Origin: Laetmonice hystrix | Lineage: Eukaryota | Assembly (NCBI GenBank): GCA_965235115.1 | Contig: OZ249438.1 | Location: 6,510,001 to 6,574,000, forward strand | Length of the DNA: 64,000 bases | Direction: 5' to 3' | Shown here: in pieces, positions 33,630-41,331 of the stretch | Layout: every line of letters starts with the position of its first letter | Position numbering within the stretch: position 1 is the first letter of the stretch | Position numbers and translations under genes: made by a program | Notes under the pieces: generated by a model | Databases searched by the model: none | Told to the model about the DNA's origin: nothing | Seen by the model: the letters and a program-made list of their open reading frames with translations, nothing else

Positions 33630-34176
33630 GGGGCAATCTATCTGCAGCACTGCTATGTGGGAGTTGCTCTATCTCAAACCACTGAATAATAGTCCGCTAC
33701 TATGAGATGCTTGTATCCATTCAGCTCGAACAGATCACTTGCCACTTGTACTAGAACCCCCAATCGGGAGTCGGGGACATCCCAGGCAGTTACCACAAGA
33801 AGTTCTTTCAAAGTTTGAACATACCGTCGTTTGTATTTTCGTTTCTTTTACATTGCAACTCCTCGCATCGAGGTAAAAAACCATCAGCTTTCGCCGGTCG
33901 TGCGGATCACCCGTTCTCTCGCGAGATCCCCTCCCGAGATCAGACTGTGGTGTCGCGGTATATTTAGACTTACTAAAACTAAACCAAGTCTCTCAGTTGG
34001 TTCCAGAACACTCCTCGCCTGGTTTTAGGATAAAATCACTACTAGTGAGTCTTGTGGCTGTAGAATGTCTCTGTCCACATATTGTCTATAACAATACTCG
34101 TTAACTAATCTACTGTAATCTCTACAGTCCAATGTTAGGAACTAAAATTGTGGACGAGTTATGAATGATAAGGTTA

Positions 34177-37100
34177 TTAATGCAGGTCTTCGTTTTGAAG
34201 CAGCAACACAAGTTCGGTAACAGGGCGAGCGTAGACCCGCTTGACGCCATCCCGCGCTGTCTGAACGCGGACCTTGCGGACCTGTTTGTCACTGCTGGGT
34301 AAAGTTTCAATGACACGTGCATAGGGCCAGTCATTGCGATGGGTGGTGTCCTTGAGGAGCACAAGGTCACCCACTTGCAGATTGCGCTGATGGGCCTGCC
34401 AGCGCTTTCGCGGTTGGAGTGTAGGCAGGTACTCCTTCCGCCAGCGGCTCCAGAATAATTGAGCAAGATGTTGGACCCGTCGCCACTGGCGTCCACAGGC
34501 GTTTGCTGCATGAGTGAAGTCTCCTGGGGGTGGCCCTATAGGGCTGGACTTCATGGTAAGTATAGCGGCTGGCGAAAGAACTTCAGGGCTGTCTGGGTCC
34601 GATGACACTGCGACCAGAGGCCGACAGTTGATAATGGCTGACACCTCAGCCATGAATGTGGAAAGAAGTTCATGCGTTAGTGGCACCTTCGTTTCTCGGA
34701 GAATGGAGTCCAGGATGCGTCTACTCACACCGATAAGGCGCTCCCAAGCACCTCCCATATGCGATGCATGGGGCACGTTGAACTTCCACTGCATGCTGTT
34801 CTGTGTGAGATAGGTCTCTAGAGTAGTCTTGTCCATTTCCCTTAGCGCCTCATTCAGCTCTCTTGAGGCTCCAATGAAATTGGTGCCACAGTCAGAGTAA
34901 CAGCATTTCACCTGGCCACGTATCCAGTAGCCCTGCGTGCGGACAGCTCCGGCCGTAATCTGACGTCCCTGGTGACGCACATTCTGATGCACGTTGCGCA
35001 CAATCAAGGTTGCGATGTACTGGCGTTTGTGTAGTAGAATGGGGTGTTTCTCCTTGTCCTCTAGGTCTGAGAGATCAAGGCGGCCACCAACTCTCATGAC
35101 TCCGTACTTGTCTAGAAAGGGGCTCAGTTTGTAGAGGGTGCTTCCCTGGGAAACTTTACCATGGCGTTGCAGATGTTGGATGTCTGACTTGAAGTCGTCC
35201 TGTTGTGCTGTCTTGATTATCAGTAACGCGGCACCTTCCATGGTCTCAACTAACCACTCGCTACGGGGACTGACATGCAGCTGGTTGGGCGTAGTCTTGG
35301 AAGACTTGTAGAGACGAATAAAGTGCATCAGCATGGCGATGGCTTTCACAAGTGAGCTCCAGCTTGAGAAGCGAGTGAAACGTTTTGAACCAAGATGTTC
35401 CTCGGCCTGAGCTGTGACCGTTGCTGCAGTGCGAACTTCAGGGTCATCCTGTGGAGTCACATAGGGTAGGCTGGTGCACATGTTTACCTGTGAGGCATGC
35501 AGAAATCTGGGGCCTTGCAACCTTGAAGAGTTCATCAATTCGTGTGCCTTGACGGAGCGTGTTGCCAGGTCTGCCGGATTGACATCCGTTGAGACGTAGT
35601 GCCACTGGGGGGGTGTGCTGGTTTTGCGAATACGTTGCACCCTATTCGCAACATAGACATAGAATCGTCTGGACTAGTTTTGTACGTAGCCCAGCACCAC
35701 CTTGCTATCCGTGTAGTAGCTGACTGACGTAAGTTGAATTCCCAACTCGTCAAGAATGGTGTCCGCCAGTTCCACTGCTAGAACTGCTGCGCACAGTTCC
35801 ATGCGGGGAATTGTTATGGGCTGAGCTGGTGACAGCTTAGCTTTCCCAGCCACAAACTGGACTGTGACCCTGTCTTTGTCGTCGCATAGGCGTAGGTATC
35901 CACAGGCTGCGATTGCTTCTGTAGATGCGTCACAGAAGACATGTAGCTCACGATGAGAGTTGAGTGACATGGGATATTTGCAGTAGGCTCGTGGGACGTA
36001 AACCTCGGCGAGGTCCACGAGAGAGGTGCACCACCTTTCCCAGCGCTCCCTGAACTTGTCCGGCAATGGCTCGTCCCAGTCGAGTGGCTTGCCATCTGGT
36101 CCAGCTGTCGTCATCTAGCGCAAGAGAATTTTTCCCTTGATGATCACCGGCGCGGCCAAGCCGAGAGGGTCGAAAATACCATTTACCAGGGATAGAACGC
36201 CTCGCCTTGTGTAGCATTTGTTGATGTCAGGAGCTTTGAAGACGATTTGATCGCTATGAAGATCCCAATACACACCAAGTGAGCTCTGTATTGGAAGGGT
36301 GTCAGCACTAAGGTCCAGGCTCCGTAGGCTGGGTGCATGTTCAGACTGCGGAAAGTGCGACATTACTTCCATGCTGTTTGAGGCTATTTTGTGAAGATGA
36401 AGGTTGGCTGTCGCCAGCATCTCCCTGGTACGCGTCAGGAGATCTATGGCCTTTTCTGCTGTGGGAAGACTTGTCAGCCCATCGTCGACATAGAAGTTGT
36501 GCTCCACAAACTGTCGTGCGTCCGCGCCGAACTTGCTTTCATTGAGCTCCGCGGTCTTGCGCAATCCATAGGCTGCGATGGCAGGGCTTGGACGATTGCC
36601 AAAAACATGGACCTTCATACGGTGCTCACAAACCTCCTTATCAGGGTTGTTGTCCTTGAACCATAGGAATCTTAGCCAGTCGCGATGGTCCTCTTGTACA
36701 TAGAAGCAGTAGAACATGTGTTCCACATCGGCCATGATCCAAACAGGCTCCTGGCGGAATCTGAGGAGTACTCCAAAGAGCGAGTTGTACATGTCTGGAC
36801 CTGTAAGGAGTGCCTGGTTGAGTGATTTTCCATTCCAGGTGGCGCTGCTGTCAAAGACTATACGTAGGTCTTTAGGTTTGCGGGGGTGGAACACGCCAAA
36901 ATGAGGAAGGTACCATCGAGGGCGAGACTCTCCAGTGTTGGAACCTGGTTTGATGGCTTCAGCATGATCCCTTGCGAGCAGCTTGCCCATGCATTCCACA
37001 TACCGCTGCTTCAGTGCTGGATTTTTATTGAAGAGCTTGCAAAGACACTTGAGACGATTCATTGCCATGCACCTGTTGTTCTCCAGGGAGACGGTGTGTT

Positions 37101-38169
37101 TGAAGGGTAGAGGGGCGACCCAGTATCCTCTGTCATCCTTGACAAACACATCCCGCATGATTGTCATGAATTGTCGGTCCTCATTCGACAGACCAGGTTT
37201 ATCATCATTCTTTGTTTTGATGAACACATCTCGGCCTATGCTGTCTTCTGTTTTGCAGCTACTGTTAATGTCTGGCAGAGTGCCGGATAGCGAGTGTGAG
37301 TCAGTGACAGCATCATCGCATAGAAGGATGCGATTGGAACAAGGAGAACAGAGAGATGGTCTCCCATTGTCAACAATGTGGGTCCGGTAGACGTCGATTT
37401 TGTCAGGCTTGTGCATTCCCTTGAGGCAGATGTCCCCCACAATGACCCAGCCGAGATCAGTACGTTGTGCCCACGGAGCATTTGCTGGTCCATTACGCGA
37501 CTCCCTAACTTTAAGAAGTTGTGGTGCATCCCTGCCGATGAGTAGCATGATTTCTGCCTCTGCGCGGTAAGGTGGGATTTTAGTTGCGATTGGGCGCATG
37601 TGACTGTAGATTTTAGCGACATCAGCAGTGGGAATCTCAGACCAGTTGCTAGGGATAACGTTACATTCTGTGATTGTCGGAAGCGGCAACTGCGTGGTGC
37701 CATCGATGGACTCAATGACCAGATCATTTATACGCCTCCCTAGTGCAGCACTTGAGCCCGCACATGTTCGCAGTTCATAAGGGATAGGCTCATTGTGACA
37801 GTTAAAGTAACTAAAGAGTTTACTGCTGGCGAGGGAACGGTTGGACTGGTCGTCCAGTACTGCATACATGGTGAGGACTTTGGTTGGGTTTTTGGCACTG
37901 TAGACATTGACTAGACATATTTTGGAGCATGACCTGTTGCCAAACCCACTCTTGGCACAGATCTTGGTGCAATTGTTGACAATCTTCACTGGCTCCCCGC
38001 CGTAGACTTGGCGGGACCCAGATGCTTGAGTTTTACCTTGAGAGCATGGGTGAAGCACCGAGCAGTGCTCAGTACTGTGGCAGTCAGAACACTGTATGCG
38101 CTCGTTGCAGTCGGCAGTTACATGTTGAGTTGATGCTGTACTGGGTGAGAAGTTGCATCCTGGTATCAA
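34177..38169 (-). pseudogene. BEL/Pao pol with two in-frame TAG stops and an integrase deletion
   Basis: YAVLDDQSNRS; LLIGRD; WYLPHF..RIVFDSS; ADVEHMF; FYVDDGL; LHVFCDAS; YTDSKVVL; SDCGTNF; FWSRWRKEYL. Stops at 36115-36117 and 35674-35676; GYWI|RG junction near 34921. Confidence 0.93.
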
Positions 38170-40219
38170 TGGACTTTGCTTTAAAGGCTCTGCAGTCAGC
38201 TAGCAGGTGATTTTTAGTGTTATGGAGCATGCAAGCTTGCCTTGGGTCCATCAATGACTGCGTGCTGTGTGAACCGTACCTTTCCGGTTTCCTTTGTGAA
38301 GTGTCATTAGATGCACTGGGTCTCACGTTCGTCTTGTTGACCCGAACTGTACCATAGGTTGGTCGTGTGCCTCTAGTTGGACGATACACGTTGCTTGGAG
38401 CAAACCGGGGTGCTTTTGTTGTAATTGGAGTGATTTGCAGGCTCAGGTCATTCCAGATATTGCATAATCGTCTGAGAAAGGCTGCTAACTCAGAAAATGG
38501 GGGAAAGCTTCCTCTATACAACTCCTTATACTTGAAGGCTTCGGCCCTCCAATTGTCCACTACAGGCGGTGGAAGTTTGGCTACGATAGGTTTAATAAAC
38601 TGAGGCGTATCCAACGCTGCAAGTCCACCGAGAGAACCATCATTTTTAGCTGCTTCCACTTCCTCGACTATGTCGCTAAATCTCTGCAAGCCTGGCCCAT
38701 CCCGTGATGCCACAGTAGGTAGTTGCTCCAGCTTCCGGATGAGTGCTTGCGTTACAGCTTCATCACTACCGAAGCGCTGGTATAGACGTCCCCATGCTTC
38801 ACTTAGACCTTTGTCCGGATTGGCTATGTATGCCCTACTAAGCCGCTTCACCATCTGTTGAGCCTCAGACCCCTCAGCCATGTGCTCAGCCATCAGATTT
38901 AACTGTTCATCTGAAGAGAGTGGAACATTTTTTATCATGTTGCAGAAGGATAATCTCCAAATCCTGAAGTCCTCTGCTTTGTCCTCAAATTTAAAGATTT
39001 TAGAAGATACCAAGTCTTGCCGTAGTAAATACTCGCCAAGGTTTTTCATGGACGAAACCATAGCTGCACTTCCCTCGCCTTCCACTCGTTGCATTTCATG
39101 TGGGTAGGTGGGAGAGGAGAGATGTGGAGAGACACAGCCTGCAGTCTGCCGAGTGTAGGCCTGGTCAGCTGCTGTGCGTGGTTGATGACTGATCCCTGGT
39201 GCAGTCATGGGTGGCATAGTTGGTGACGTGGTGTTACCCTGACACGGCATGTTTGAGACAGCTGGTTGCATTATAGGTGGGTACGCAGATGATGAGAGAC
39301 GTGGCGAAACTTGGCCTGTAGTCGGCTGAGTGCGAAACTGGTCAGCTGCTGGGTATGGTTGATGACCAATCCCTGGAGCAGTCATGGGTGGCATGGTCGG
39401 CGACATGGCGTTACCCTGACGTGGCATACTTGAGACAACTGAAGGTTGTGTTATAGGTGGGTACACAGATGATGAGAGACGTGGCGAGACGTGGCCTGCA
39501 GTTGGCTGAGTGCGAAACTGGTCAGCTGCTGGGTATGGTTGATGACCAATCCCTGGTGCAGTCATGGGTGACATGGTTGACGACATGGTGATACCCTGAC
39601 GTGGCATGCTTGAAACAGCTGAAGTTTGTGTGGTTGACATACCTGTGGCAAGTGACAACTTCTGTGGAGATTCATGACATGGGCTGTGATAATGCTCATT
39701 CATGGCTGCTGTGGTTGTGAAAACTTCATTATACTGGCTGGGTGCTGACTGTCCCATGTCCAGGTCACCCATGTACACTGTGCCCTTTGTGGGTGAGACA
39801 CCCGTCACTGAGTCTGAAACCTGTCGATCAGCAGGTAAGTCAATGTTTGGCGTACTGACCTTAATAGGTTGTCCCTGAGCTTCATCAGTACCTGAGAACA
39901 TTAGGTCCACCTTTTCAGCCGGTGTAGGTAGCTGAGACACGGGCATGCACTCATCGACGCCTCCACCTTCAAGTTCACAGAACGCTTCCTCGATAGCCCG
40001 GAGCCGTGCGTCTGCTACCGCCGCTTCTTCCTCGAGATGTAACCGCTCGACCTCTAACTGGCGTACCGTGGCTTCCAGTTGAGCCTGAGCCAACCTACCT
40101 CCGCTGGCTGCTCTAGTTTTGGCTTCCGCAGCCTTAGCTCGAGCTTCCGCTATGACAGTTGATGACTGTGATGAGCTGGATGAGCCGGTATGCGACCGTG
40201 AACAGCGAGATGCTGACAT
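38084..40219 (-). CDS. BEL/Pao gag with internal 60-aa repeats
   Basis: KFEDKAEDFRIWRLSF..EAWGRLYQRFGS..IVAKLPP..W is BEL gag-like. Confidence 0.88.
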   Translation of the reverse strand: MSASRCSRSHTGSSSSSQSSTVIAEARAKAAEAKTRAASGGRLAQAQLEATVRQLEVERLHLEEEAAVADARLRAIEEAFCELEGGGVDECMPVSQLPTPAEKVDLMFSGTDEAQGQPIKVSTPNIDLPADRQVSDSVTGVSPTKGTVYMGDLDMGQSAPSQYNEVFTTTAAMNEHYHSPCHESPQKLSLATGMSTTQTSAVSSMPRQGITMSSTMSPMTAPGIGHQPYPAADQFRTQPTAGHVSPRLSSSVYPPITQPSVVSSMPRQGNAMSPTMPPMTAPGIGHQPYPAADQFRTQPTTGQVSPRLSSSAYPPIMQPAVSNMPCQGNTTSPTMPPMTAPGISHQPRTAADQAYTRQTAGCVSPHLSSPTYPHEMQRVEGEGSAAMVSSMKNLGEYLLRQDLVSSKIFKFEDKAEDFRIWRLSFCNMIKNVPLSSDEQLNLMAEHMAEGSEAQQMVKRLSRAYIANPDKGLSEAWGRLYQRFGSDEAVTQALIRKLEQLPTVASRDGPGLQRFSDIVEEVEAAKNDGSLGGLAALDTPQFIKPIVAKLPPPVVDNWRAEAFKYKELYRGSFPPFSELAAFLRRLCNIWNDLSLQITPITTKAPRFAPSNVYRPTRGTRPTYGTVRVNKTNVRPSASNDTSQRKPERYGSHSTQSLMDPRQACMLHNTKNHLLADCRAFKAKSIDTRMQLLTQYSINSTCNCRLQRAHTVF
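39110..39620 (-). repeat. About 3 x 180-bp coding repeat in BEL gag
   Basis: SSMPRQG..PMTAPGIGHQPYPAADQFRTQP..VSPRLSSS.YPP, three times. Confidence 0.9.
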
Positions 40220-41331
40220 CGTTCCGGGCGATAATGGGTGCTGTTAGCTGGGCTACACGTGGTATTCACGTGGTTGGATTGTCGGCGCTCGACTCGGCGA
40301 TGTTTGCTAGGTTTTTTACTGTACTGGAACCCCCAATCGGGAGTCGGGGACATCCCAGGCAGTTACCACAAGAAGTTCTTTCAAAGTTTGAACATACCGT
40401 CGTTTGTATTTTCGTTTCTTTTACATTGCAACTCCTCGCATCGAGGTAAAAAACCATCAGCTTTCGCCGGTCGTGCGGATCACCCGTTCTCTCCCGAGAT
40501 CCACTCCCGAGATCAGACTGTGGTGTCGCGGTATATTTAGACTTACTAAAACTAAACCAAGTCTCTCAGTTGGTTCCAGAACACCACTATTTGCCATGGC
40601 CGTTCTGGCACTTCTGTGGGCAATAATGGCTCTTTCTGCTGTCTTGTCCTGTGACTCTGGCAAGCGTCACATCTTGATACAACGTCTTCAATTTGCTTGT
40701 TGAGGCCTGGCCAGTATAAGATGTCCCTGGCCAGTTCCCTTGACAGTTCCCAAATGGGATTCATGGATGATGCCTAGCATTTCTTGACGCATAGAGCTTG
40801 GTATGACAATCTTCTTGCCCTTGTATACAATGCCATCTTCTACAGACATTTCCTCAAGGAAATCAATGTAGTGACGGTCTTCTGGGCTTGCTTGTGCCTT
40901 ATTTTCAGGCCATGCTGGGCCTTTGATGACTGTGATCAACTTGCAGGGCCATGTCTTGCCTTGTCTCTTCTTTCACCTGCAGCAACCGTCTGTCGCTGAA
41001 GTTGTATGTGGATCTGATGTCCTCTGAGCCCACAATAAATACGTTGTCTCCATCCATCAAGAACTCTGGATCTGTATGGTCCTAATACAGCAAAGACAGA
41101 CATTTCGCCATGAACGTGTGACAGGATTGCTGTCTGTGTCTGTTCCCTTTTGATACAATCGTGACATAGAGTTAGGCACAGGGATATCCTTGGCCTGTGC
41201 ACCAAATCAAATGTGTGGTGCCTGATCTTCATACACATCTGCTGGAGACGTGGTGCGAGTTGGAATAATGGCTTATCCCTCAGCTGCACAAGAGGCTTGT
41301 GGTCAGTTACCACTGTTATGTCAGATCTCTA

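Follow-up and report, generated by a model that had tools for sequence, protein, structure and literature searches.

The window, a stretch of 64,000 nucleotides of Laetmonice hystrix DNA, carries on its minus strand a 6,837-bp LTR retrotransposon with the following features.

40584..40588, minus strand: 5' copy of the 5-bp target-site duplication AGTGG, with the 3' copy at 33742-33746, from the alignment of the LTR flanks
40320..40583, minus strand: 5' LTR, 264 bp, TGTT...TACA, direct repeat with 33747-34010 at 99% identity
38084..40219, minus strand: gag-like ORF of 711 aa, starting 100 nt past the LTR
34177..38169, minus strand: pol region in three ORF pieces (36115-38169, 35674-36114 and 34177-35640)
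34011..34019, minus strand: polypurine tract GGCGAGGAG, directly before the 3' LTR
33747..34010, minus strand: 3' LTR, direct repeat of the 5' LTR, 99% identical

The LTR borders were fixed from the AGTGG target duplication and the polypurine tract GGCGAGGAG. On the sense strand, which is the minus strand of the window, the 5' LTR ends in ...CCAGTACA at 40320, and relatives have the same ccaggcgaggag / ccagacggggag tract ahead of the 3' LTR. A Pfam search gave no match for the gag-like ORF. Since the coding region contains PF05380 (Peptidase_A17, Pao) and PF18701 (DUF5641), the element was assigned to BEL/Pao, and it presents the features of this group: Pao-type pol domains, TG..CA LTRs, a short target duplication and a polypurine tract. 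Searching with the reverse transcriptase (RT) gave 352 homologues at E<=1e-20, nearly all of them with PF05380, and those with 41-50% identity come from fish, frogs, lamprey, ticks, molluscs, corals, anemones and a crinoid.

The copy in the window is broken into four ORFs in all. Four sequencing runs of one sample were compared as contigs, in which copy variants were seen and no transcript starts or ends; 20 nt behind 38139 are present in other copies in these contigs and absent from the window copy. About eight full-length copies exist in the genome, and since they are 98-99% identical and several keep open frames of about 2,130 aa, the family was considered young.

Some further observations were made around the element. 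Its insertion interrupts the integrase gene of a different, degenerate retroelement (window 40584-40800 and below 33742); the flanks read HESH...CDACQSH...ERPWQIV and then ASDLFELNG across the element, with a frameshift upstream. Within the gag-like ORF, at 39087-39623, a 180-bp unit is repeated three times in tandem and in frame (77-91% alike, 60 aa each); the contigs from the DNA runs fragment at this place and their summed depth goes up. Between 25000 and 33314 of the window there are two pairs of 300-nt direct repeats, one 6,293 bp apart (26722 and 33015, 99%) and a second one 2,783 bp apart (25000 and 27783, 97%), and these probably represent further LTR elements or some tandem arrangement.

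The sequence directly after the 5' LTR has an exact complement inside the LTR itself, and the following features were defined.

40310..40319, minus strand: candidate primer-binding site GTAAAAAACC, directly after U5
40446..40455, minus strand: candidate self-primer GGTTTTTTAC, positions 129-138 of 264 in the 5' LTR, exact complement of GTAAAAAACC
33873..33882, minus strand: GGTTTTTTAC in the 3' LTR, in identical columns of the LTR alignment without gaps

The segment at 40446..40455 is proposed to be the start of R or near it. When the two arms are paired, the C at the 3' end of the segment stands opposite the first base after the LTR. An earlier note on this DNA, made from the letters alone, had reported that the LTR is followed by GTAAAAAACC and not by TGG, that both LTRs contain the exact complement, and that the pairing has the geometry for priming; these three observations were reproduced on the sense strand, at 40319-40310 for the site and at 40455-40446 and 33882-33873 for the complement. 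The site was unchanged in 8 of 8 full-length copies. In one full-length copy (L004 and L016, G000 contig 1, about 59.95 Mb), the primer segment of both LTRs ends in T instead of C (GGTTTTTTAT) and the site is unchanged, so a G-U pair results at the junction.

When the LTR was shuffled 5000 times with its dinucleotides kept, an anchored 10-mer came up in 0.08% of the shuffles. When 2000 other offsets of the internal region were tried, none reached 10 nt and one reached 9 nt. One 10-nt match by itself would be weak evidence, suggestive and short of decisive. The earlier note had also proposed a second 8-bp pair that could close the fold, TCGGGAGT / ACTCCCGA at 40510-40503 and 40344-40337, which did not hold up. 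It occurs only in the 5' LTR of the window element, while the other copies and the element's own 3' LTR read TCGGGAGG at that position, several reading ATTCCCGA. About 0.5 pairs of 8 bp are expected by chance in 264 nt. Being private to one copy and at chance level, this pair was rejected as a structure and treated as chance.

A primer from the host was searched for in several ways. No TGG follows the LTR of the window element, and neither a CCA-complement nor a tRNA-type site was found in the elements studied. The tRNA-complementary site of about 18 nt that is typical of Belpaoviridae is absent from the window element, its 100-nt leader contains no other candidate primer site, and there is no tRNA gene in the window. 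In a genome-wide pattern search, the 17-nt complement of the site was found exactly only at the 8 sites themselves, and with up to 2 mismatches the genome gave no more matches than the control. In addition, the primer strand would include a T run of 4-7, which is T6 in the window element. Since a T run of this length inside a nuclear tRNA gene terminates RNA polymerase III, the primer strand cannot derive from the interior of such a gene.

Two other readings of the site were discarded. A tRNA-like reading of TGGTCAAACATCGCC, in the family with 61% RT identity, cannot be matched to tRNA positions 53-61, and in the window's active family the TGG has been lost. A splice-donor reading of CA|GTAAAA was set aside because it leaves unexplained that each LTR mirrors its own site. 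Regarding the tRNA genes of this genome, a first look with an Rfam tRNA search gave about 32,000 tRNA-like candidates, with 63 scored places listed. Identical-scoring tRNA genes form large arrays on G000 contig 1 at 71.03-71.23 Mb, with a spacing of about 2.2 kb, and on contig 7 at 27.26-27.46 Mb, with a spacing of about 7-8 kb.

The pairing was then compared among 19 diverged BEL/Pao elements: nine families from this genome, the window element included, and elements from a sea anemone, a tick, a mussel, a lamprey, a frog and two fish, together with L079, L080 and L084. The families from the same genome were found by a search with the RT ORF, and LTR borders were definable for eight of them besides the window element. 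Those with no definable LTR pair were left uncounted, namely the own-genome families at 64%, 42%, 39% and 36% (C20) RT identity, a locus of the tick Dermacentor and a crinoid locus. An exact complement of 8-15 nt anchored on the first post-LTR base was found in 12 of the 19 elements, and in one more it is present as 7+3 with a bulge. The anchored complement is weak, with 5-7 nt, in six elements, mostly from vertebrates. The arms in the other families of this genome are as follows, with RT identity to the window element.

61% family: site GTAAAAAACT, LTR AGTTTTTTAC, 10 exact pairs (15 with one mismatch)
45% family: site GTAAAAAGACT, LTR AGTCTTTTTAC, 11 exact pairs
Two families of about 36%: site GTGAAAACT, LTR AGTTTTCAC, 9 exact pairs
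Third family of about 36%: site GTGAAAAACT, LTR AGTTTTTCAC, 10 exact pairs
38% family: site GTGAAAAAACT, LTR AGTTTTTTTCAC, 9 pairs and one bulged U
41% family: site GTAACAAACT, LTR AGTTGTTAC, 7+3 with a bulge
34% family, with an LTR over 1.3 kb: site GTAAACGACT, LTR AGTTTAC, 6 pairs, weak

The site varies from family to family and both arms shift jointly, with A/T runs of 4 to 7 and with joint changes of GTA/TAC versus GTG/CAC, GAC/GTC and GAG/CTC. Shuffling gave p values of 0.0004-0.008 in the six best own-genome families. In a cross table of sites against LTRs, the longest match for each site was with its own LTR, or this was tied with the LTR of a sister family.

The same was found in elements of other animals, with the longest complements listed here.

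L079: site GTGAAAAAAGAG, LTR CTCTTTTTTCAC, 12 exact pairs
L080: site GTAAAAGG, LTR CCTTTTAC, 8 exact pairs
Sea anemone Actinostola: site GTAAAAAAAGAG, LTR CTCTTTTTTTAC, 12 exact pairs
Tick Ornithodoros: site GTGAAAAGACT, LTR AGTCTTTTCAC, 11 exact pairs
Contig L084: site GTAGAAAAGTTTGTT, LTR AACAAACTTTTCTAC, 15 exact pairs

In Actinostola and Ornithodoros it is the 3' LTR that matches exactly, and the 5' LTR, which is older, has acquired one later change in the segment. In the sister pair L079/L080, an A-T pair is swapped for G-C at helix position 3. The weak cases are Xenopus (7 pairs), lamprey (6), two fish (6 and 7) and Mytilus (5), which have just the core GTAAA(A) / (T)TTTAC in common. In the RT tree, the three weak vertebrate elements included (lamprey, Xenopus and one fish) form one clade, and both deep clades contain strong helices. 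The main check that the earlier note had asked for in related BEL elements, namely whether the sequence after the LTR covaries with the LTR segment, was thus positive in 12-13 of the 19, from several animal phyla. Together with the lack of a tRNA-type site, this lends support to its reading that the element may be self-priming. As a separate observation, the anemone contig (L081:18559-26209) has, next to its BEL/Pao element, a long tandem array whose units measure about 58 nt.

The position of the LTR arm was also studied. Whatever the length of the LTR, from 213 to more than 1,300 nt, its distance to the LTR end is 62-194 nt, and it is the sole internal LTR block that could be aligned across families. 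The arm mostly begins with AGT after C or T (CAGT/TAGT), which is initiator-like, and in many families AATAAA or ATTAAA is found within about 15-50 nt 3' of it. An initiator-like start and a nearby poly(A) signal are compatible with a short R that would begin at or near the arm. L084 has a TATA box and CAGT about 27 nt upstream of the arm, and its primer would lie inside the leader and not comprise the first bases. In the window LTR, an A/T-rich box and CAGT are located 65-85 nt upstream of the arm, and the RNA may start upstream of it. In the distant BEL/Pao family of L084:6440-6515 and L087:4710-4790, CAGTTTTT stands about 28 nt downstream of a clear TATTAAATA box, with a 15-nt self-complementary arm about 22 nt past CAGTTTTT.

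Folding was calculated assuming that the RNA starts at the arm. In the window element, the minimum-energy fold closes R-U5 with the helix of site and arm, with a mean pair probability of 0.88, and defines the following feature.

40320..40445, minus strand: 126-nt loop proposed for R-U5, with the primer/site helix closing it in the minimum-energy fold

The mean pair probability of the closing helix was above 0.7 in 10 of the 14 elements folded, and the helix was absent from the predicted fold in three of the six weak-helix elements. It is A/U-rich and in most families has only 9-12 bp.

Taken together, it is probable that the window element primes its minus-strand DNA with a piece of its own RNA instead of a tRNA, in a Tf1-like manner. 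What is observed is the anchored complementarity, its compensatory maintenance across families and phyla, the fixed distance to the LTR end and the lack of a tRNA-type site; from this we infer the RNA start, the cleavage and the priming itself. The genomic RNA would start in the LTR at, or slightly upstream of, GGUUUUUUAC. This segment would fold back over about 126 nt of R-U5 and pair with GUAAAAAACC, which occupies the ten positions next to U5. Cleavage immediately 3' of the paired segment, for which the element's RNase H is the presumed agent as in Tf1, would leave a 3'-OH on the C opposite the first post-LTR base, and reverse transcriptase would copy U5 and R starting exactly at the LTR border. 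The primer may then be the extreme 5' end of the RNA, as it is in Tf1. In the standard model of LTR reverse transcription, the plus-strand strong-stop DNA copies the primer, and by this step the site would be rewritten from the LTR segment in every cycle, which would account for the strict co-variation of the two arms.

The same helix could instead be a panhandle of the leader with a role in packaging, dimerisation, translation or RNA stability, some host RNA being the primer. The high probability of the predicted fold is in agreement with this, and retroviruses, in which U5-leader stems adjoin the primer sites, provide a precedent, priming in the present element being a prediction from sequence. 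Nevertheless, the helix of every family is anchored exactly on the first post-LTR base, a register that only priming needs. The 100-nt leader contains no further candidate primer site, the LTR is not followed by TGG and no host locus is complementary to the site, so this explanation was considered unlikely. A host tRNA, tRNA half or other small RNA ending in ...UUUUAC as the primer, with the likeness to the LTR being unrelated (due to promoter function, for instance), is less probable still. Conservation of the core GTAAAA / TTTTAC from cnidarians to vertebrates would suit such a primer, as would the weak cases, which have only the core. However, family-specific changes of the site are mirrored in the own LTR, which one host RNA cannot explain. 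The T run of 4-7 would end transcription by RNA polymerase III, there is no CCA-complement, and the 17-nt complement exists only at the sites themselves, all of which makes a host primer very improbable.

The earlier note had cautioned that a 10-nt match with a homopolymer core can arise by chance. In favour of chance are the low complexity of the sequence, the limited weight of a single 10-mer in 264 nt and the second pair, which was itself a product of chance. The shuffle p values in six families of the genome, the independent exact matches of 11-15 nt in other animals and the consistent position of the arm refute this reading, and coincidence is hardly credible as an explanation. Priming by the element's own RNA is thus retained as the preferred reading. 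For the wider idea that it is also the normal and ancient replication mode of a large clade of BEL/Pao elements, found throughout Metazoa in cnidarians, ticks, molluscs and vertebrates alike, we see even chances.

If this is true, the textbook description of Belpaoviridae as tRNA-primed would be incomplete and self-priming would occur in all three LTR-retrotransposon superfamilies, BEL/Pao being the third one added, a pattern that would favour either a repeated easy origin or an ancestral hairpin-type primer. The priming mode is a defining trait of retroelement families, and LTR finders, which seek tRNA sites, would score such elements as having no site. In host defence, tRNA primer sites are attacked by small RNAs that come from tRNA 3' ends, and a self-primed element would escape this. 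The anchored complement offers a simple sequence rule to find more cases, and the origin of priming modes becomes testable on the tree.

The window element resembles the canonical BEL/Pao elements (Belpaoviridae, Semotivirus: Tas, Pao, BEL, Achilles) in the order of the pol domains, the TG..CA LTRs, the 5-bp target duplication and the polypurine tract. According to the ICTV profile, replication in Belpaoviridae is tRNA-primed, with an 18-nt site complementary to tRNA-Arg or tRNA-Gly (PMC8742986), and Achilles has a tRNA-Tyr site (PMC4580426), whereas the elements studied here have no tRNA site. Primer sites are not discussed in the two main BEL/Pao surveys (PMC3118150, PMC554778). The earlier note knew of no report of self-priming in BEL/Pao, and a literature search likewise found none, subscription-only papers such as the early BEL-like descriptions being out of its scope.

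Descriptions of self-priming exist for Tf1/sushi and Tcn1 (gypsy), and for TAR (copia) it has been predicted (PMC6317226, PMC2864245). In Tf1, the RNA's first 11 bases pair and RNase H cleaves between bases 11 and 12 (PMC7175516), compared with pairing over 8-15 nt in the BEL/Pao elements. Like Tf1/Tf2 of Schizosaccharomyces pombe and the Tf1/sushi group, these elements lack a tRNA site, and the bases after U5 complement a segment of the element's own LTR-derived RNA at or near its putative start, over 10 nt in the window element. R-U5 would likewise be the loop, and the register would set the 3' end of the primer at the LTR border. Unlike in Tf1, the helix is A/U-rich, the RNA start and the RNase H cut are only putative, and no equivalent of the Tf1 U5-IR stem-loop is established in the BEL/Pao element. 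Tf1/sushi elements are Ty3/gypsy chromoviruses, whereas Pfam and the homologues place the window element in BEL/Pao, with a Peptidase_A17 and DUF5641 pol and outside the chromodomain lineage. The Tcn1 clade (gypsy) and TAR/Houba/Osr-1 (Ty1/copia), from fungi and plants, are similar in the kind of evidence: self-priming was likewise predicted there from complementarity alone (PMC6317226, PMC2864245). They belong to other superfamilies and kingdoms, while the candidate BEL/Pao case is from animals and would represent the third LTR superfamily.
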